Shown: positions 52,662 to 64,000 of the stretch, one piece after another
Layout: the number at the start of each line of letters is the position of its first letter
Numbering within the stretch: the first letter of the stretch is position 1
DNA from: Macrostomum hystrix
Taxonomy: Eukaryota; Animalia; Platyhelminthes
Length of the DNA stretch: 64,000 nt
Assembly: GCA_950097015.1 (NCBI GenBank)
Contig: CATNEN010000009.1
Span: 62,001-126,000, forward strand
Reading direction: 5' to 3'
The notes under the pieces: generated by a model
The model's input: the letters and a program-made list of their open reading frames with translations, nothing else
The model's database searches: none
Told to the model about the DNA's origin: nothing
Made by a program: the position numbers and the translations under genes

Positions 52662-54286
52662 CCAATCGGAGAAATGGTAGGCAGTCTGGAACTGCAGTGC
52701 ATACCAAATTTGTAACTAACTGCTCCGGCATTACCAATATTTTAATATTCAGCTCGCCATTGCTAAACTTCCTATTGCACATTGATATACTACATATGTT
52801 CCTACGAAATAGGCATAGATCCAGCATTTCTTAACTAAAATTTTTCTCATGTTCTCTTTAGTTGGCAAATAGTGCCCATTGAGTGGGCGAATTCTCCAAA
52901 GCTCAAGCCAAACAGAACCATTCAAAGAAGGCTAATCGCCACAAAAACTTTGTTGTTTGTTTTATCACAAGCGGTTATGGCTGCTGTAATTAAAAAACTT
53001 AACACAACTTCATAACCACAAAAAAACTAATTCTTCAAAAAGCTAAGAGAGGAACAAGTAGGCTACAAGCATGGCACACTAAAAGAAACTATGCTTTTAT
53101 ATGAAGTTTAATATAGCCTTGAGGGATATCCATAAAGTAGTGGGAATCACAGATACTATAAACACTAGATAGGCCACTGAGGCTAATTTTCTGGGCAAGT
53201 TTTTTATTCTACTTTCTGCTTAGTAGTGATAAAAACATTTATGCGTTTATATAAAAAAATAAAAAACCAAGATGAATACAATGCAGCAATTGTATTATTA
53301 TATTATTAGCAAAAATAAACTTCTAACTATAATTTCTACGACAAAAAGCAATAGTGTGAATGCTTTAGATTGCATTGACAGCAATATTATTGCAGTTAAC
53401 TATACTTGGCAAATACAAGCTATTATATACTGCATATTTGTTTATCTAAATAGAATGATTTCACATCAATTAATCAGCTCATCGCAGTTTGTGAAACTTT
53501 CGCAGCGTGCTGCTCCTGCTCGCCGCTGCTCGCAGGCTTCTCATCTCGCAGCGGCACCAATGATGCAGTCGCAGCCGTGCAAACGTGCTGCATACCCCGC
53601 TTGGCTTTTTAGTCCGGATTTTGTCCGCTTTTGTCCGCTTTTGGGGTCCTTTCCGGACCAAATCGGGATTTTATCCGCATTTCATCCGGATTTCACGTCC
53701 GGACCAAAATGTGGGAGAAATTCCGGGCCAAATCCGGACAAAGGGGTTTCGCAAACCACTTTTGATCCGGATCTCATCCGCAATTTGATCCGAACTTTTG
53801 AGCGGACGAAAAGTCGGACTGCAGTCCGGATGAAAGTAGGGCGATAATGTATTTTGTCCGGAAATTTCATCCGCTTTGTCTCCCGCCTGTTCAACCGCAA
53901 TTGAGCCGGACAAAGTTCCGGACGAAGATCGGACAAATATTAAGATTGCTGTCTTACTTAATGTAGTCATCAGCTGTACCCACTGTACTGTCTGTACTGA
54001 CAGACTGCTTATTCGTATAGTATTCGTATGCAAATCCCGGATACGCTAATAAATGATGTCATTCTTGTGCAGCGCGCACCGATTCAATTTGGCACTTTGA
54101 CAGCTCGCCAGCCTTCTTTATTTGCATGATAATGAAGAGTTCTAGGTTGGCATTTCATAGGCATATTGTCAAGGGACTTAAACTGTACAGTGATGTACAC
54201 GAAGCTTCTTTTCCATTTTGCCGTACGTTTTGTAGGGTAATAGCTTCGCCTCCAAAAAGAGTAATAATTACGGTGCCACTGTTAAC

Positions 54287-57200
54287 ATGAGACACAAAGG
54301 TAAAGCTTTCTTTAAAAAATTCGGTCATTCCAGCGCACCACGTTTCTGCTGTCAGCTGCATATGGAGGAGCAGGACGCACAGCATCGCAGGCGCCTCTGG
54401 ATGAGGGCGTACATGCAGAAGCGAAGGGCGGCTCGCACACGCTCTCGGTCACCTATGTCTGCCTCTGGCTCATTGCCCGCCCATCCGGACCACACCCCAC
54501 CCAGCGCCGATGACGGCTCAGACGGCAGTGCAGATGACGGCAGCGCACATGACGGCTCAAACGGCAGCGCCGATGATGGCTCAGACGGCAGCGCCGATGA
54601 TGGCTCAGACGGCAGTGCAGATGACGGCAGCGCCGATGACGGCTCAGACGGCAGCGCCGATGATGGCTCAGACGGCAGTGCAGATGACGGCAGCGCCGAT
54701 GACGGCTCAGACGGCAGCGCCGATGCTGGCTCAGACGGCAGCGCCGATGCTGGCTCAGACGGCAGCGCCGATGACGGCTCAGACGGCAGTGCAGATGACG
54801 ACAGCGCAGATGACGGCAGCGCCGATGCTGGCTCAGACGGCAGCGCCGATGACGGCTCAGACGGCAGCGCCGATGCTGGCTCAGACGGCAGCGCCGATGA
54901 CGGCTCAGACGGCAGCGCCGATGACGGCTCAGACGGCAGCGCCGATGACGGCTCAGACGGCAGCGCCGATGACGGCTCAGACGGCAGTGCAGATCACGAC
55001 AGCGCAGATGACGGCAGCGCCGATGCTGGCTCAGACGGCAGCGCCGATGACGGCTCAGACGGCAGCGCCGATGCTGGCTCAGACGGCAGCGCCGATGACG
55101 GCTCAGACGGCAGCGCCGATGACGGCTCAGACGGCAGCGCCGATGACGGCTCAGACGGCAGTGCAGATGACGACAGCGCAGATGACGGCAGCGCCGATGC
55201 TGGCTCAGACGGCAGCGCCGATGACGGCTCAGACGGCAGCGCCGATGCTGGCTCAGACGGCAGCGCCGATGACGGCTCAGACGGCAGCGCCGATGACGGC
55301 TCAGACGGCAGCGCCGATGACGGCTCAGACGGCAGTGCAGATGACGACAGCGCAGATGACGGCAGCGCCGATGCTGGCTCAGACGGCAGCGCCGATGACG
55401 GCTCAGACGGCGGCACCGATGACGGCAGCGCCGATGACAGCAGCGCCGAGGACGCCGGTGAAAATAACATCCCCGTGCCCCATGACATGCTGGAAAATGC
55501 CTGGCACGATGCCCTGCCTTTGACAATCGGCGAAGCGCTGTGCGAGGTGAATTCCTGTGCATTAGACCTAAATGTGTCACGGGACGGATTTACCAGACTG
55601 TTGGCAATGCTGCATCGCCTAGTGCCCGGCAATAGGCTGCCTAGATCAGGACGAGCCGCTCGCGATGCAACTAAGTCGATTCAGACCATGTCGGGCACGA
55701 CAAAGTGCTTCACAGTGTGCAATGAATGCAACAGGAGTTCGCCTGGGGTGTGCCGAGCAGGTCTCACAACTTGCGTGCACTGCGGTGCGACCAACGTGGC
55801 GAACTTCTGGTGTTTTGATGTGCCCAGACAGCTGAAGACGCTCATAGAGTGCCGTAGCATGTTGGACCACGTCGTTTTCCCGGCCGACAGAGTAGTGCCA
55901 CCCGACGTAGTTCACTTTGCCACTAGTGAGCTGTACATTCAGTTCATGGATGGCGTCGATGTTCCGAGCCGCTGCGACCTGTCCTACACTTTCTGCTCAG
56001 ACGGCTTTCCACTGTTTAGGACAAGTTCGGTTGAAGTTTGTCCCGTCTACCTTAGTGTCAATGAGGTACATGACCGTTTTAAGCTGCGCTACGTAGTAAT
56101 TTGCGGCGTTTGGGCCGGAAAGAAGTAGATCCATGCGAGTGCATTCCACCCATTGGTCGTGGCCACCCTTAATGACCTACGCTTTACCGGGCTAGAGTTT
56201 GTTGACCAACAAGGCGTTCAGCGCCGTCTACGGTTTCATCCGCTAATCGCGATGTTTGACGCTCCAGCCAGAGCTGACGCGCTGTGCATGAAGCGCTTCT
56301 CCGCAAAATATGGATGCGATAAATGTTATCTGCTGACGTCCCTACACCCCTCGAAGCACGGTCGAGTGTTCGGCGTACAACTAACTCCTGCCATGCAGGG
56401 AACCGCCCGTCGCCTTGGCTGCACCCAAACGCTGGTTCGGTCTATGAATGACACATTTACTCTAGCTGAGCGCCACTCGCAGCAGAACCTAAACTCACGC
56501 ACCGACGTGTTAGGCGTCCGTGGACACTCGCCGCTCGGGCGACTGTGCGGGTTCGACTTTATCAGGGGGACACCACCGTGCTTTCTACACCAATTGTGCT
56601 CGGGATTGGTTCGCTACATCCTGTTTCAAATGTTTCTCGTGCGACATGAGAAGCCTGACCGGGGTGATACCAACTGCCCTGATCTGCACGGTCGGATTGC
56701 CGTAGTACAGAGTCGCCTGGAGAACATTCGCCTGCCCAGTTGCGTGCAGCGCCACACGGTGCATGAGCTAAGAGACCTCCGTCACCTTCGTGGCCACGAG
56801 CTAGAAGTCTGGATCCTAGCTTTCGGCCCGATGGTGCTGGGGGAATTTCTGCCACCGGAACACTACTGGCACCTGTTGCTCCTATCCTCCGCTGTATTCT
56901 GGATGACCTTGGAGGTTGCCCCAAGAAGCGAGTTGCCGCATGTCGAAATAACTCTCCGGCATAAATAACGCGCCTATACTCTCTGAGGGCCCTCACGTAC
57001 AACAGCCACTGCCCACCGGGGTGACCATCGTGGTATTCGAGTCCGCGCCCACGGAGGGCGGCGCCGGTAGAGGAAGGTCCACCTCCAGCTTTGTGGCACT
57101 TCGAGGACCAGAAACGACGTCCTTCAATTTCGCACGTGTTGAGGCACTCGGCGTCAACCAAGAAAACCGCGTCATGGTCTCTCTCGTAGCGCTACCCATT

Positions 57201-57425
57201 GAGCCTCAGCTTGACCCACTGGAGGCACTTTGCGCGGTCTCTGCAGCGTCACCTGAGCGTGGGTGCCGCTTCACTCATGTGCGGCGCCTTATGGTTGACC
57301 CGTTCGTTGACAGGCTCATTCTCGGTGCCGCTGTACGCGTGCCTCTGGCCGACGTTGTCGGTGTATGCGTCGTTTCAGACACGCATATCGCCCTAATGCC
57401 GCATGCCCAAATGGGTTTTTCTTAG
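54287..57425 (+). pseudogene. CACTA/EnSpm (TNP2-like) transposase with in-frame stop and internal truncation
   Basis: CxxC...CxxCG, SDGFPLF..S..VCPVYL.VNE, GVWAGKK*(TAG 56126-56128), FDAPARA..CMK.F...GCDKC, FLHQLCSG; 57021-57425 resembles the C-terminal part. Confidence 0.85.
54497..55445 (+). repeat. In-frame 24/15-bp coding minisatellite (ADDGSDGS)n
   Basis: GCCGATGACGGCTCAGACGGCAGC units; all unit lengths are multiples of 3. Confidence 0.95.
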
Positions 57426-58504
57426 CAGTTTAGTCAAGCCGGTTCTGTCCAACGACAAAAATGTAAACTTAAGGAAAAAGTATACTATAAAAGAAAATAC
57501 TATAAGTTATAGTATAATCTATACAATATATTGAAATATTTTAGATTCGCCTCTGGTCTATCGATGTCCAGCTTAATGAATATTCTTATTATCTTCACCT
57601 GTTGTCTTTGACAAAAGCCAATTGCACACGGCTATTTCTAGGAAATGAGGAGGCGTAGGAAATCGACTATCTTTTCCTGATGTTGCACTCACTTTAGATC
57701 TTATGCTCGCAATCGGATTATATTTAAATGATCTTAGAATAAAAAATCACAAAGATGAAAACTCACTTTAAAATTTTCTGAGAGGTGTTTCCCAAACACA
57801 AGTGGTTAATGGTTACTAACGGATCCTCTTGTTAGATCACAATCGGAGGAAGTATGGTCTCAAATTGAAGATTGGATAAGAATTCAAGGAATTCAAGGAA
57901 CTTCAATGAAATAAGTCTAGTTTCTGACTAAGGTGTAGTCTGAGTATTGTAGCTGGCCAGGGATAGCAATGGCTAGCAAAGAGAATGAGTGGATTATATC
58001 AACTGCGGCTGGCTTGCGTAAGAGGAATTCAGGGAGAAAAAGGTTGGGGAAACACGTTCTCTCAGTGCAAGAACTTTTATATTACTTTACCAACGGCGGT
58101 CATTCGCCAGGATTTTCTAGGCGAATCCTAGGGCTCTTGCAAACGCATTTTTGCATAATAGGAAAACAGAATATTTTTTGTTTTTTTTTATATAAGCGCA
58201 TATAGGCGTGAATCGCATGGGTTAAATTGTAACACTTCAATATGCTATACCATTTTCAAACGAATATCGTATACGTTTACATTCATATGACACGTAATGT
58301 AAATAGAGACTTGAACGAACAATGTAACGTAATCTACTGGACACTAAATAAATCCGTCATGCTTTTGACTTGCGTAGTCCGCGCTGCTGGCCTGTCTTCT
58401 CATTTCTGCTCACGGTTCATCACTACCCACTACATAATTACAAATATGGCATAGGGAAACATGGAGACCTAAGCGCTGCATAAATCTTGCCATATTTCAG
58501 CCGA

Positions 58505-59113
58505 ATGGATGCCTCCGGACCTATTCAGTGGTCGCGGATTTTGGACGACGTCCTACTGGACAGCAACTTCTTGGACTTCTTGGACGACGATGATACCGAG
58601 ACGACCCTCGGGGAGAGCGACCGCCGATCACCGGGAGAAGGAGCCTGGCCCGTCGAGAGCCAGAACTTCTTGGACCCGGACGACTCGCTCGCGCTATGTC
58701 CGCCTGCTGCCAGCAGTACACAGGCACCTGCTTTACCAACTAGCCCTCGTGTACCCGTTAAGTACACGTGGGTGGACTATAACCGGTTGCCCGACGAGCC
58801 GCCGCCCAATTTCGACTCTCGCCGACCCGAGGAGCGCCGCCGAATCCCCGCTCAGACGTGCGCGGATTGCGAGAGTTGGTTCGCGGCGTTGCCACCGGCA
58901 GAGCGTGAGCGACGACTGCAGTGCCACGGGCGCCATCGACATCGCCCAGTTATCCAGTCGGCCGACTTCTTCGCTATTGCCATGCCGCCGAGCCCACCAC
59001 CCGCACCGATAGAGCACATGAAGGTGATGAAGCGCCGTCGGCGCCCCCTAAGAGACCTGCAGTCTGCAGGGCAGTCGGTAAAGAAGCAGTCGGTTGATGA
59101 GAAAGACGACTGA
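58505..59113 (+). CDS. CtIP/Sae2 C-terminal-domain-like protein (202 aa, intronless) inside the transposon nest
   Basis: RRPEERRRIPAQTCADCESWFAALPPAERERRLQCHGRHRHRPVIQSADFFAIAMPPS matches the CtIP pattern EERR..L.G.TC.EC..YY..P.EERE..L...RHR....F...FP; uninterrupted ORF. Confidence 0.75.
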   Translation: MDASGPIQWSRILDDVLLDSNFLDFLDDDDTETTLGESDRRSPGEGAWPVESQNFLDPDDSLALCPPAASSTQAPALPTSPRVPVKYTWVDYNRLPDEPPPNFDSRRPEERRRIPAQTCADCESWFAALPPAERERRLQCHGRHRHRPVIQSADFFAIAMPPSPPPAPIEHMKVMKRRRRPLRDLQSAGQSVKKQSVDEKDD

Positions 59114-59388
59114 AAGCCGATGTAGCCATTATGATGCGTGTACGTGACATGTGTTTTCATATAATCTTGGGAATTAAAAATTGAAGTTCGGCTCACAACT
59201 GGCAAGACTGGAACACAGAGACTTCATTTCTGTTATTTTCGCATTCACTCATGTTACTCCATAGACTCTATTAGACTTCTTGGTTACATTAGGTTAACCT
59301 TCGGTGGTTAGTTAACAAGGTTGCCTCCGGTTACCATGAAAATTATTATATACATCAACCGTCATCATCATCAGTTGCAGCTGCTACA

Positions 59389-60618
59389 ATGACCAAGCCT
59401 ACGACGTCCAATCGTCGCCTCAGCACGTCGCCTCTAGGCCGGACCTCGCCTCCCTGAGCGGCCTCCGCTGCCTGACGGACTCGCAGTCCCTGCTCCGAGC
59501 CCTCGAGAAGGGACCGTCCAAGTCCACCTCGCCAGCGTGCCGGGAGATCTGGATGCTGCTGACCCACATTGCCGCCCGCTTCCAAATCTGGCTGCAATGG
59601 GTCCCCAGCCACTGCGACCTCCGGCGGAACGATGCCGCGGACGCCACCGCCAGGACCGCGGCCGGCCTCCCCCAGGACGAGACGCCGATCGACTTCGGGT
59701 CAGCGCGGGCCGCCCTCCGCCGGGTCCTCGCCGAGCGCACCCGCGAAGCCTACGCGGCCGACCCGCACTGCGCCACCCACCGTCTGGCAACCGCCACCGC
59801 CGCCCCGCGGCCACGCCTAAACCGGGCCGACGCGGTGACCCTCGCCCAGCTGCGCACGGGCCACTCACCGCTCCTGCGCTGGTATCGGCACCGGATCAGC
59901 CTGGACACCGCCGCCACCTGCCCCCGCTGCGGGGCCGCCGACGAAGACGTGGCCCACGTTTTCCTGCACTGCCGGGCCCTTGACGACCTTCGGGCCCGCA
60001 TCCTTGGACCAAACCCGTCCCTGGCCGTCCTCTCGACGGACGGCCCCGCGCGCTCGAATTCCTCCACACGGTAGGGGCGCAGACACGCCCCCCGGATCCT
60101 ACCGGCCGGGAGTAACAACAACAACAACGTCCAATCGAGCAGCATCGAAGCAAAAGGGCGGGCTTCAGCGAGGAAAAGTAGGGAAGGCCAAGAAGCAAAA
60201 GGAGAACACTCCGCCCGAACCAACGGGCGTGCCTGCTTCGAGCGACACGCCTCCTCCCACCGCGCCACGTGACGCAGCTGACGCGCTGGAAGAATCGGTC
60301 ACAGACCAGAATGGCCAGACCAGCAGCACAGAGGACATGGTGCCTTATAAGTCGGAGAGCGTGGCGCGTTACTTTCTGTTCAAATACAGCTGTTACCATG
60401 ACCGCACGGAAGTAGTGTCTACCGACGGTGAGAGCAGTGCTCCCGTCATTGTCGCGCGCAGTCGGGACTCACCGATCCCTGTTGCCGTAGGGAGCCGTGT
60501 GCTAATAGTCACAGCTAAAAAAAACCGCACCTCGGCGAAACGCTGGTCCGGAGACCTGCTTCGCGGCCCGTTTTCTAAGAAAAGTGAGGCCACGGGTGCC
60601 GCCCTGCTAACCAACTAA
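59389..60618 (+). pseudogene. Putative CACTA accessory ORF interrupted by a LINE
   Basis: Removing 59415-60137 (LINE plus one TSD copy) restores MTKPTTSNRAASKQKGG...GDLLRGPFSKKSEA..LLTN*. Confidence 0.7.
59415..60126 (+). mobile_element. 5'-truncated I-group LINE (RNase H C-part + Zn finger, (AAC)n tail)
   Basis: QWVPSHC...NDAAD..AR, AQLRTGH, CPRCG...EDVAHVFLHC; (AAC)n tail ~60115-60128; TSD ACGTCCAATCG at 59404-59414 and 60127-60137. Confidence 0.92.
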
Positions 60619-60639
60619 CAAACTGAACCCTGCTAAGCT

Positions 60640-62792
60640 GATAGTTCGGGTTTTTCATTGAACCCGTTGCGCCCTCTAAGGATGCTGAAGAGATTCTGAA
60701 AAGGGATGGCGTTTCACTTTGCTAAAGCTGTACTGCTCTGTGCACTCTGAAAGTATGATTTACATGTACTGCCTTTCCGGGGAGTAAAATTGCGTTTTTG
60801 AAAAAGTGACATTTCAAAGAAGCTAAATTAGCTAATAATAGAGAATTTCGAAGAACCGAAAAATACGAGCAACACATAAAAATGCACAGCTGATGTGAAG
60901 CTCACCTCAACATGATCCTGCGAGAACCGTCGCGTGCAGACGTCGTTCTGAATTAACTGAGCGGACAAGCAGCGAATCGCAGAAATTGACAACAGCCAGC
61001 CCTCCTTGAAATTCATGGTCGCCTTCGCAGCTCTGCCGGTGTGCGGAAGGAAGCGCCAGCTTTTCACAAAAGTCTCCACTTTTCGCAACTGCTCCATTTC
61101 GTCCACCAACGACGCACGACGAATCGGCTGCTTTGTGCCTTTGACGAAGGAGTGTGATGAGTTCAGCAGATCGAAGGCGTCATTCAATCACTCAGCGAAC
61201 TCGGCGGTCTGCAGGGCGTCAGCCTCCATCACTTGGTGCTGTACGAGTGTCTTGATGCCGCTGGCGACGGAACGGCTAAAAATCTGCGCTGCGAGAGAGA
61301 CACGCATCTTCTGTCCCAGCTGCAGGTTAAAGTGAGCATCGCTCAAACGAACTGCAAGTCGTAGCGATCGGCTGCAGTCGACCTCGTAGAAGCTGAGTAG
61401 GAGATGCCATTTCGCGAGCTTCTGGCCGTCAAACTCAATGTCATTTTTCATTAGGGCATTACGGGTGTTCTTCAGGCAATGTGGCACGTCAATCATCACG
61501 TACACAGGGGCCTGTGTAACCGGATGCTGTAAGAACGGTGCTGCCGCGCTTGCCTGCCTGCTCAGATGAACCCACTGCGTTGATTCCTGGTCGGCAACCA
61601 GAGCAACAACCCGAACTCCAGCCTCGTGACTGGCGCGCAAGCACTCAGCGATGGCGGCCTTGAACCCGGACTGTCCGAGAGTGTGGCTCACGGGATATTG
61701 GGCGATCGGCTGCTTCCAGTCCTGTAAAACACCTCGCAGCACGGCGACTACTGCCTCGTTCACTGGCTTCAGTTGCTGCTCCTGCTGCTGCTGCGTGCTG
61801 GTACACTCCCTCAGTGCCTTGACTGTCCGGTCGTCGAAGCCGACTACTCTGTCAGCGTTCGAGTCGTACCGCACGCTGGGTGACAAGCTCATGCCGTCGA
61901 AGCAAAGGGTCGCCAGTCGTCTTTGTTCAGGGGTAGCATTCAGCTGGCTGCTTAACAACTGAAGTATCAAGCGGCACGGCCCAACAGATGGAAAAAACTG
62001 GCGAATGCGCCTCTTCAAGGATGTATTCGATGGCAGAGCCAATCCCCAGTGGTTTCGTAACGGCTGATAAGCAGCAGGGCTCATGTGGTGCAGCTGCAAT
62101 GATCTGTTGATGACATCCTTCGACCAGCGCACCCCCCGACTGCGAGAGCCCAGTCGACCACGAATGCACGACTGCGCTGCACTTTCCTTGGCCATCGAGA
62201 GTTGCTGTTGCAGGCGTTTGATCATCGCTTGTCGCTTTCGGGATCGCCGCTGCAGTCGCTTTATCGTTGCCTCTCGTGCTTGGAATCGGCTGCGGAGGTG
62301 AGAGCTCTCAGCAGCAATAGCTATTCTCGGTGCAGTATCTGGTAGCCAACGTTTGCTCTGCCACTGCACTGGCAGCAGGCAGGTCGCAGGCTCGGCTGCA
62401 GGCAGATCGCTAATTGGCTCCAGCATTGGAGGGTACTTGTTGTCTGCTTCATCATCAGTTCTTTGCACAGAGGGTAGTTGGTCTATTCGAAAGAGCCGAG
62501 GCAGCACCAGCTCTCGGTGTGGGATTGCGTCCCAGCGAAGACGGGTGTCTTGTTCGTGGCGCCTTGTAGGGCAGTTGTAGGCCTCGTCCGTAAAGTGCAA
62601 GCTGCATACACGTAGGCCCCGTGACTTAATTGTTTGCAGGTCAATATCCAGCTCCAATAGCTGCTGCCAGCGCTTCGCCACAGTTTCATCTTTCGGAAAT
62701 CTATGCATTCGCACCGGACATCCTTTCTCGGGTGGTGATAGCACAGAGCTCGTGCAAGTTGGAGCACAGCAGTGGTTCGAATTAAATGACAT
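60640..62792 (-). pseudogene. THAP9/P-element transposase, disrupted
   Basis: THAP (CCAPTC..FPKD..W..VCSLHF), CFDGM, DVPHCLKNTRN, KMRVSLAAQIFS, in-frame TGA at 61190-61188, FSQDHVE|intron|NLFSILRG, then cut off near 60640. Confidence 0.92.
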
Positions 62793-64000
62793 TTCTACGA
62801 GATAGAAAAGCTAGTACTTTCAATAATAACTCTTGACTCTTCCTGTTTATCAATATAAGCTTGTATTTAAACACGATTCGCCAGCCCCAAAATTTCTAAC
62901 CTCTCAAACCTCCACCTCCTAACCCAGGCTAGCTATATGCAGTCCTTGGTTTTCTATCCCCACCACCTGTGCGCCTAAATTATCGATCCACTCACCCTGC
63001 CTTATACGAAACCGATATCAACCCCATTTCAGACTACACCCTTCCTCCACTTTAAAAGATAAGCAGCATTGTACACTGCCGCGTCTTAATGTACACCATT
63101 ACTGCCCAAAACAAGTTAGTTGTCGATGACGATCTTATAGCAAACGATGTCTTGAAAACAGTCGCTCGATTTGTCTAACTTAGCAAATAATACTGTTGCT
63201 TACTTTCATTGCTACTAAGCAGAAAGTAGAATAAAAAACTTGCCCAGAAAGTTAGCCTGAGTGGCCTATCTAGTGTTTATAGTTTCTGTGGTGGGAATTT
63301 TCAACTTTCAATCTAGCTTGCAGTTGAATTTTGTTTTATGGATGACAATCGGGATTTTCAAAAGCAGCTTTATGTATATATGCACATAATATTGATTTTT
63401 TCTAACAGTTATTGGTATTTAAAATTTTGACTGATTTAATTGAGTTCCTTACATTATAAATCAGAAAATTATTTGCTAGGGTTTTCATCTGATAAAAATA
63501 AGAATTTTGCTGAATCAAGTTTTTTAATTATGGCTAGGCTAACAGATAAAAAGGTGTATATGGACCAAATAAAAAACAAGAAAATATTTTGTCCCCCAGA
63601 AGCCAATGTTAAAGTATTTTGTGCTATGCTATTAAAGTTACTCTAGTGCTAGGGCAGTGCATCAAGTGGAGCTTCCAGCCTCCAGTAGTGCCTCATTTTG
63701 GAGGTGCACACAAGGTGAGCCCTAACATGTGATTCTGGGCAATGCAGATATCAACAACAAGGAGCCACAGTCCACAGTCACCAAAGCTGGGTGCTGCTCA
63801 ATATGCAACTAATCACCTATCAAAAGGCTATTAATCCAAGAGACAAAGAGCCACTCACACCAAACAACTTTCTGCATGGACAGTGTCAATGCCAATTTGT
63901 GCTGATTGGCGAGAATCTGACATTGCTGATATTGAGCTAGATCATTAAAGTGAGACCTTGGGCATGCAGAACAATGTTTACCCAAATCTGTGAATGAATT

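Follow-up and report, generated by a model that had tools for sequence, protein, structure and literature searches.

How a module of a double-strand-break resection factor comes to lie among the genes of a transposon, and whether it does anything for the element that carries it, is the question raised by a 64,000-nucleotide stretch of the Macrostomum hystrix genome (contig CATNEN010000009.1, positions 62,001 to 126,000; hereafter the window). An ORF in this window was noticed to resemble the C-terminal part of CtIP/Sae2 proteins. An earlier analysis made from the letters alone (hereafter the sequence-only reading) proposed that it encodes a hairpin- and end-processing cofactor, supplied by a CACTA-type transposon for its own use. 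The features of the locus are collected in Table 1.

Table 1. Features of the nested elements and of the CtIP-like ORF (coordinates of the window)
Feature	Position	Strand	Remarks
Outer P element, left TIR	53148..53234	.	TSD GTGGGAAT ahead at 53140-53147
Left end of inner transposon, CCCGCTTGG..., with array of subterminal TCCGG repeats	53596..53999	+	no matching right-end array in window
Inner-element transposase, Transposase_21-like	54287..57425	+	broken
615-nt segment missing from another element copy	57603..58217	.	organism A contig joins 57602 to 58218
CtIP-C-like ORF	58505..59113	+	intact, 202 aa, GC island (62% GC) amid 39-40% GC spacers
Acidic/Pro-rich N-terminal part of ORF	58505..58750	+	predicted disordered; no significant homology
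SAE2/CtIP C-terminal-homologous part of ORF	58811..59050	+	residues ~103-182; CxxCE, RHR, FF..MP, KRRRRP
Accessory ORF, start	59389..59403	+	severed from the rest by LINE insertion
LINE fragment, 5'-truncated	59404..60126	+	RNase H / zf-RVT remnants, (CAA)n tail, 11-nt TSD ACGTCCAATCG
Accessory ORF, remainder	60127..60618	+	homologous to L002 7509-8237
P-element transposase	60828..62792	-	THAP + TNP-like RNase H + GTP-binding insertion domain; in-frame stop 61188-61190
Outer P element, right TIR	63204..63290	.	TSD GTGGGAAT after at 63291-63298

Homology of the ORF to the CtIP/Sae2 C-terminal domain

The ORF is intronless, begins with its own ATG, keeps a full reading frame and is the only CtIP-like copy within the 64-kb window. 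It contains all the motifs listed in the sequence-only reading, namely EERR (residues 109-112), C119-x-x-C122-E123, PPAERERRL (residues 130-138, the PxxERExxL motif), R143-H144-R145 and FF..MP (residues 155-161). The Pfam hmmscan returned no match at E<=1 for the whole ORF; for the excised residues 93-166 it identified SAE2 (PF08573) as the sole match, with 12.0 bits versus a gathering cut-off of 19.8 bits (E 0.47), and the cellular CtIP of Macrostomum lignano likewise stays under the PF08573 threshold (13-14 bits). A phmmer search of the ORF against 1.84 billion representatives revealed three meaningful matches: a 395-aa M. lignano protein (P0001; E 3.4e-18, 50% identity over 115 aa, residues 72-187), a 315-aa protein composed of a coiled coil and a Pfam SAE2 domain (5e-9) (P0002; E 4.7e-11), and a 640-aa protein with a CtIP_N domain and a Pfam-significant SAE2 domain (P0004; E 2.1e-4). 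The SAE2 relationship that Pfam hmmscan leaves under threshold was recovered by hhalign, which matched a profile of the ORF and P0001 over 98 columns to a separately built alignment of 16 proteins with SAE2 domains (probability 98.9%, E 3.6e-17). P0001, P0002 and P0004 have 17 invariant columns in common; the ORF retains every one of them, among others C119, C122, E123 and R143-H144-R145, while its identity to the nearest cellular CtIP is only ~42-50%.

Comparison of the predicted structure with reviewed UniProt entries by Foldseek points in the same direction, as the best six matches are the C-termini of vertebrate RBBP8 proteins, with the low scores to be expected of a region that is mostly unstructured. 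The language-model search of the ORF is also consistent with CtIP homology. Sequence and profile searches of the PDB retrieved no solved structure of the CtIP C-terminal domain. A word-indexed protein search with the ORF, whose length window left out the 395-aa relative, gave no match; the metagenome contig scan revealed no relatives of the ORF; and the profile search for short CtIP-C proteins retrieved mostly vertebrate RBBP8 fragments and no transposon-linked relatives. Judged by these sequence comparisons, the C-terminal half of the ORF is a real, divergent CtIP/Sae2 C-terminal domain, although it falls under the Pfam threshold, and the homology proposed in the sequence-only reading holds.

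With the CtIP/RBBP8-Ctp1-Sae2 family (PF08573) the ORF shares ~100 homologous residues, comprising the CxxC and RHR motifs, the F-F/W and P positions and a basic KRR.P tail. It differs from the members of this family in that it is transposon-encoded, scores 12 instead of 19.8 bits, has Q-S for T-P and possesses neither the tetramerisation coiled coil nor the internal region. In the AlphaFold2 model residues 1-80 are disordered and devoid of helix (pLDDT ~50), with no coiled coil predicted in these N-terminal 80 aa; the C-terminal part is more confident (pLDDT up to 92), with short predicted helices around CxxC and before RHR. The search of the rest of the 64-kb window for a coiled-coil or other CtIP exon found none, in agreement with the earlier statement that the coiled coil is missing. 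The replacement of the CDK-type site was likewise correctly noted: the canonical T-P (human T847 / yeast S267, the CDK site ahead of the F-W motif), which is invariant in 16/16 canonical SAE2-domain sequences, aligns with Q151-S152 of the ORF. The suggestion built on it, namely that the product is "cell-cycle-uncoupled", is not warranted, as the cellular CtIP of M. lignano also has no canonical T-P, and in the ORF, P0001 and P0002 alike an (S/T)-P aligns with human T859 (S163-P164 in the ORF).

The inner element and the P element around it

The whole block lies inside a P element, as claimed originally: its TIRs (87 nt, 93% complementary) are flanked on both sides by the 8-bp TSD GTGGGAAT. An in-frame stop breaks the reading frame of the P transposase, which makes the outer P element, too, look inactive. 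This stop (61188-61190 on the minus strand) lies between "...AEFAE" and "MNDAFDLLNS...", and the C-terminal part of the P transposase is seemingly missing where the inner element sits.

The transposase pieces of the inner element match an 863-aa protein (P0006; 49% identity, E 5e-51 in the protein search, tblastn E 7e-153) encoded on a 10.2-kb marine-metagenome contig, L002. Pfam hmmscan of the window pieces and of P0006 gave no match. The nearest Atlas clusters of P0006, found with language-model features and predicted structure, are Transposase_21/DUF1258 (score 0.97, TM 0.74-0.78). L002 represents a complete element of ~9.9 kb (L002 1-10198), with the intact 863-aa transposase, two downstream ORFs, TIRs that start with CCCGCTGAAAAAA, and TCCGG arrays at both ends. 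A corresponding left end, CCCGCTTGG, is found in the window at ~53596, where 20 TCCGG-containing repeats are present in 53500-53999 versus 0.54 per 250 nt expected; a right-end TCCGG array of the inner element is not found in the window. The termini are thus of the CCCGCT... type rather than CACTA, and a pattern search for CACTA termini gave matches at chance level only. No target site duplication is evident at the flanks of L002, and the window copy has no right end. On the basis of the predicted fold and the cluster assignment, the element family is probably in or near the CACTA/Mirage/Chapaev superfamily. The earlier label "CACTA-type" therefore survives as far as the Transposase_21 clusters and the predicted structure of P0006 go, but not with regard to the termini, and Pfam offers no match in its favour. 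One candidate TIR of the inner element, a 27-nt inverted repeat at 53240-53266 / 58176-58202, was rejected: it is AT-rich and of low complexity, its right arm falls into a segment that other copies do not have, and the element's actual left end is marked by the TCCGG array.

En/Spm-type CACTA elements encode a transposase, TnpD, and a DNA-binding protein, TnpA, and possess subterminal repeats. The window and L002 elements resemble them in a transposase that is probably of the Transposase_21 kind, in a second conserved gene downstream and in short subterminal repeat arrays. They differ in the CCCGCT... termini and the lack of a readable TSD, in an accessory gene that is weakly BEN-like and, in the window, in the extra CtIP-like gene. 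L002 may represent a branch of the Transposase_21 superfamily in animals that has been little described and does not end in CACTA.

The accessory ORF, reassembled from 59389-59403 and 60127-60618, is homologous to the second ORF of L002 (E 9e-7), for which the only lead is a weak similarity to BEN. The CtIP-like ORF is thus placed between the transposase and the accessory ORF, as first described, and has the same orientation as both; no in-frame splice can join it to the accessory ORF at obvious sites. Its sharp rise in GC resembles the GC of the element's other genes. In contrast to these, the module has no counterpart in the complete related element: tblastn found no CtIP-like sequence in L002 (E>2), which argues that the module is a lineage-specific addition.

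Several other features of the inner element were noted. The N-terminal region of the window transposase contains ~1 kb of in-frame tandem repeats (54450-55450, (A/D)DGS(D/A)GS..., ~360 aa); this DGS-type expansion is not present in P0006. The LINE fragment at 59404-60126 comes from a non-LTR retrotransposon, has ~72% GC and landed in the first codons of the accessory ORF. The AT-rich segment 57603-58217, in place of which another copy has GT and inside which several short contigs end, may be a separate small repeat.

Other copies of the element and coverage by RNA libraries

We compared the window with contigs from public runs of the same species (organism A) and from four wastewater metatranscriptomes, which cover the region at 95-99% identity. 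In the other copies 59403 is joined straight to 60127, with 11 shared bases, so that 59404-60126 is a LINE insertion private to the window copy; the CtIP-like ORF and the accessory ORF are contiguous there, and the LINE is also missing from the RNA contigs. Overlapping contigs of organism A chain the transposase, the spacer minus 57603-58217, the CtIP-like ORF and the accessory ORF, repeating the gene order of the window. One 88-nt contig of organism A runs from 58755 through GTT to 58612, possibly an in-frame 147-nt tandem duplication in the disordered half of the ORF in some copies, or an artefact of the assembly graph.

The window transposase has a stop codon at 56126-56128 and, relative to other copies, 10-nt and ~300-nt deletions near 56964-57008, and the part matching P0006 residues 613-748 is missing; the other copies have no stop at 56126 and retain both lost segments. 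Homology of the window with the other copies stops at ~60615, beyond which the RNA contigs continue into sequence that is not present in the window, and the loose-end sequences of the other copies were not found in the window either. The window copy of the inner element is therefore dead, as its transposase is broken, its accessory gene is split by an insertion and its right end is lacking; more intact copies of the element exist.

Contigs from RNA libraries cover the transposase, the CtIP-like ORF, the 3' spacer and the accessory ORF, and leave uncovered 57754-58530 (including ~500 nt upstream of the ORF) and the P element. This suggests that the CtIP-like ORF is transcribed, with the reservation that RNA depth is low and DNA carry-over possible. 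In a run labelled X1, the type of which we guessed as DNA, depth is ~12 over 57532-60674 only, including the window-specific LINE junction, and zero on the transposase and the P element; the contigs of this run join the window precisely at 57532 and are foreign to it on the left. The pattern could stem from a derivative or duplicate that has no transposase or, alternatively, from transcription of the window locus.

Origin of the module

P0001 and its companion P0005 are proteins of the flatworm M. lignano (PAA54340.1 / PAA88737.1). Their gene is spliced and flanked by genes for acetyl-CoA synthetase (ACAS) and EMP24, and its longer form carries an N-terminal coiled coil; it is the cellular CtIP gene of M. 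lignano. Among cellular proteins it is closest to the ORF, with which it shares the want of the canonical T-P and the (S/T)-P at the T859 equivalent, and from which it differs as a spliced host gene with a coiled coil does from an intronless ORF with an unrelated N-terminus inside a transposon. Outside the universal motifs, the stretches KYT..DYN.LP and FFAI.MPP are common to the ORF and M. lignano CtIP. Such lineage-specific similarity fits an origin of the module in a related animal's own CtIP gene.

The part of M. lignano CtIP homologous to the ORF is encoded by one last exon (residues 205-395), and a good splice acceptor (~58500) is located 4 nt upstream of the ATG of the ORF. Both observations would agree with the ORF being simply the terminal exon of a normal host CtIP gene, or of a paralogue, whose introns have been filled by transposons. 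We regard this explanation as very improbable, and largely refuted by the context: the ORF sits between two same-orientation genes of one transposon, in an order repeated in other copies; the whole block is enclosed in a P element whose 8-bp TSD is intact; the 64-kb window contains no coiled-coil or other CtIP exon; and the ORF is multi-copy, with variant contigs. Capture of a terminal exon together with its acceptor was also considered and is weakened by a faint "NFL" resemblance near the start of the ORF (LEDNFLT in M. lignano), which precedes residue 205, where the last exon begins, and would map to the preceding exon. Given this resemblance, exon capture and a processed copy both remain as origins of a captured module.

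Selection and decay

If the module matters to the element, its copies should bear traces of selection, and the two species for which copies are available give different pictures. Of the five ORF variants listed for organism A, four are synonymous, with a binomial p of 0.012-0.049 that varies with the mutation model assumed; the fifth is V90A, a nonsynonymous change private to the window. Divergence of the ORF is also lower than that of its flanks on the same contigs (1/609 vs 11/792, p 0.016), and a second comparison of this kind gave 2/162 vs 10/221 (p 0.08). We take these values as a hint of purifying selection on the ORF within organism A, from tests that rest on 5 to 12 substitutions and AT-rich flanks and are not fully independent of each other.

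In organism B, a second species, the copies are ~90% identical to the window, and only over <=58391-59130. They carry R143H, H144N and R145stop, by which the RHR motif is destroyed, and a DNA contig has in addition a 4-nt deletion (frameshift) at 59056. The 23 changed codons comprise 14 nonsynonymous and 9 synonymous ones. The substitution pattern among the copies thus hints at constraint in organism A, and in organism B the decay is compatible with neutrality. Nearly all changes in the domain of organism B are CpG>TpG; within 58797-58991, 15/16 changes listed for the contigs of organism B are CpG>TpG or CpG>CpA, and the window's element has a CpG observed/expected ratio of about 1.0-1.2. The pattern points to decay of the methylation type in organism B and to no CpG depletion in the window genome.

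The contigs of organism B part from the window exactly 17 nt past the stop codon of the ORF, a boundary that would be explained if the ORF unit (about 58391-59130) were an independent mobile or duplicated piece that landed in the element by chance. A 21-nt imperfect inverted repeat that brackets the ORF (58485-58505 / 59187-59207, 81% complementary, possibly by chance) could be read in the same way, but it does not coincide with the boundary at 59130. Moreover, the bounds of the unit show no TSD, poly(A) tail or convincing TIR, and several contigs of organism A run from the flanks into element sequence without a break. We consider an independent unit improbable.

Passenger or modulator of break repair

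With rather better than even confidence we favour the explanation that the ORF is a lineage-specific, captured fragment of host CtIP and a passenger in a Transposase_21-type element. One lineage of such transposons would have acquired the CtIP C-terminal module from a host genome as additional cargo, which occupies the spacer that separates its transposase from its conserved accessory gene. The module exists in several copies in the same species and is probably transcribed; it would spread with the element without belonging to the core transposition machinery. The sequences themselves show the homology, the place within the element, the multiple copies, the matches in RNA libraries, the absence from L002 and the decay in organism B, from which capture of a host gene and the role of a passenger are inferred. 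The absence from L002 and the decay in organism B count for its being a passenger. That the ORF is still intact would be due to the youth of the family and perhaps also to some selection; in the window, where the copy of the element is dead, intactness would reflect youth. We rank next after the passenger a modulator of MRN maintained by selection, then an independent unit, and last a host exon.

The selected modulator, which we consider unlikely, would be a functional, element-encoded regulator of MRN (Mre11-Rad50-Nbs1) kept by selection in the element lineage: a monomeric CtIP C-terminal module that stimulates Mre11 at the breaks left by excision, or is a rival of the host's own CtIP, and so shifts the repair of the donor site. 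It would account for the retention of every invariant CtIP-C residue in a domain so diverged from its nearest cellular homolog, and for the hints of constraint in organism A. It also fits an ATG directly past a splice acceptor, RNA contigs that cover the ORF alongside the other element genes and spare the stretch upstream of it, and a GC island like those other genes. The conserved columns, the variants and flanks, and the position of the ATG and of the RNA contigs are also what counts against the passenger. Opposed to a modulator are the same absence from L002 and pseudogenisation in organism B, the small number of substitutions behind the signals of selection, and the lack both of the oligomerisation domain and of the canonical T-P site needed for MRN stimulation.

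Hairpin processing, the role given to the ORF by the sequence-only reading, fares no better. To our knowledge no hairpin intermediates have been demonstrated for the CACTA/Mirage/Chapaev superfamily. For Ac/Ds, a hAT element, hairpins in yeast are opened mainly by Pso2, on which >95% of the recovered revertants depend, and the share of Mre11/Sae2 is not separable from end joining (PMC3299998). The C-terminal region of human CtIP on its own (790-897) is inactive in cells, where it supports no single-strand annealing (SSA), and a human CtIP with 165-790 deleted, in which the N-terminal region is fused to the C-terminal region, stimulates MRN much less and has lost NBS1 binding (PMC7261161). Together with the absence of the module from L002, the ruined RHR motif of organism B and termini that are not CACTA, these findings speak against a self-encoded cofactor of hairpin or end processing. 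A C-terminal-only module without a T847-type site is, in the light of the truncated human proteins, likelier to be inert or a competitor than an activator. If translated, the ORF would yield a small protein, acidic and disordered at its N-terminus, that has the CtIP C-terminal module for contacts with MRN and DNA but cannot tetramerise; by analogy with truncated human CtIP it would activate poorly, and any effect would more likely be to compete with host CtIP.

A bolder version of the modulator holds that an animal transposon lineage took over the tail of CtIP that contacts MRN, and that selection maintains this tail as the element's own regulator of break processing, either a minimal activator or a decoy that blocks host CtIP. 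In either form it would steer the repair of excision sites, for example to copy-back from the sister chromatid. We regard this as slightly more doubtful again than a selected modulator in general.

Significance

DNA transposons are well known to take up pieces of host genes, chiefly in plants. Our search of the searchable literature found no paper combining CtIP with CACTA or gene capture. Transduplicated host gene fragments in DNA transposons include plant CACTA captures, Pack-MULEs and Helitron captures (reviewed in PMC13317346); the locus studied here resembles these in that a host-derived coding fragment lies between parts of an element, is multiplied and apparently transcribed, and is lineage-specific. 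It differs from them in its animal host, in being a complete module with its own start instead of a chimeric patchwork, and in its cargo, a DNA-break-processing factor.

It is unusual for an animal transposon to carry a whole, intact and apparently transcribed module of a factor for double-strand-break resection. We see in this locus a probable transposon-captured host gene fragment, a known phenomenon, with an unusual and potentially meaningful cargo. If the tail of CtIP has indeed been recruited as a regulator, the ORF would be the first transposon-encoded CtIP-like factor. Should it prove to be under selection, it would provide a natural experiment that separates the MRN-contact tail of CtIP from its oligomerisation domain, and a direct handle on how cut-and-paste elements control repair of the donor site. 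If it is a passenger, it would offer a clean, datable case of gene-fragment transduplication in an animal. The element that carries it defines a little-described Transposase_21-like family, characterized by CCCGCT termini and TCCGG subterminal repeats.
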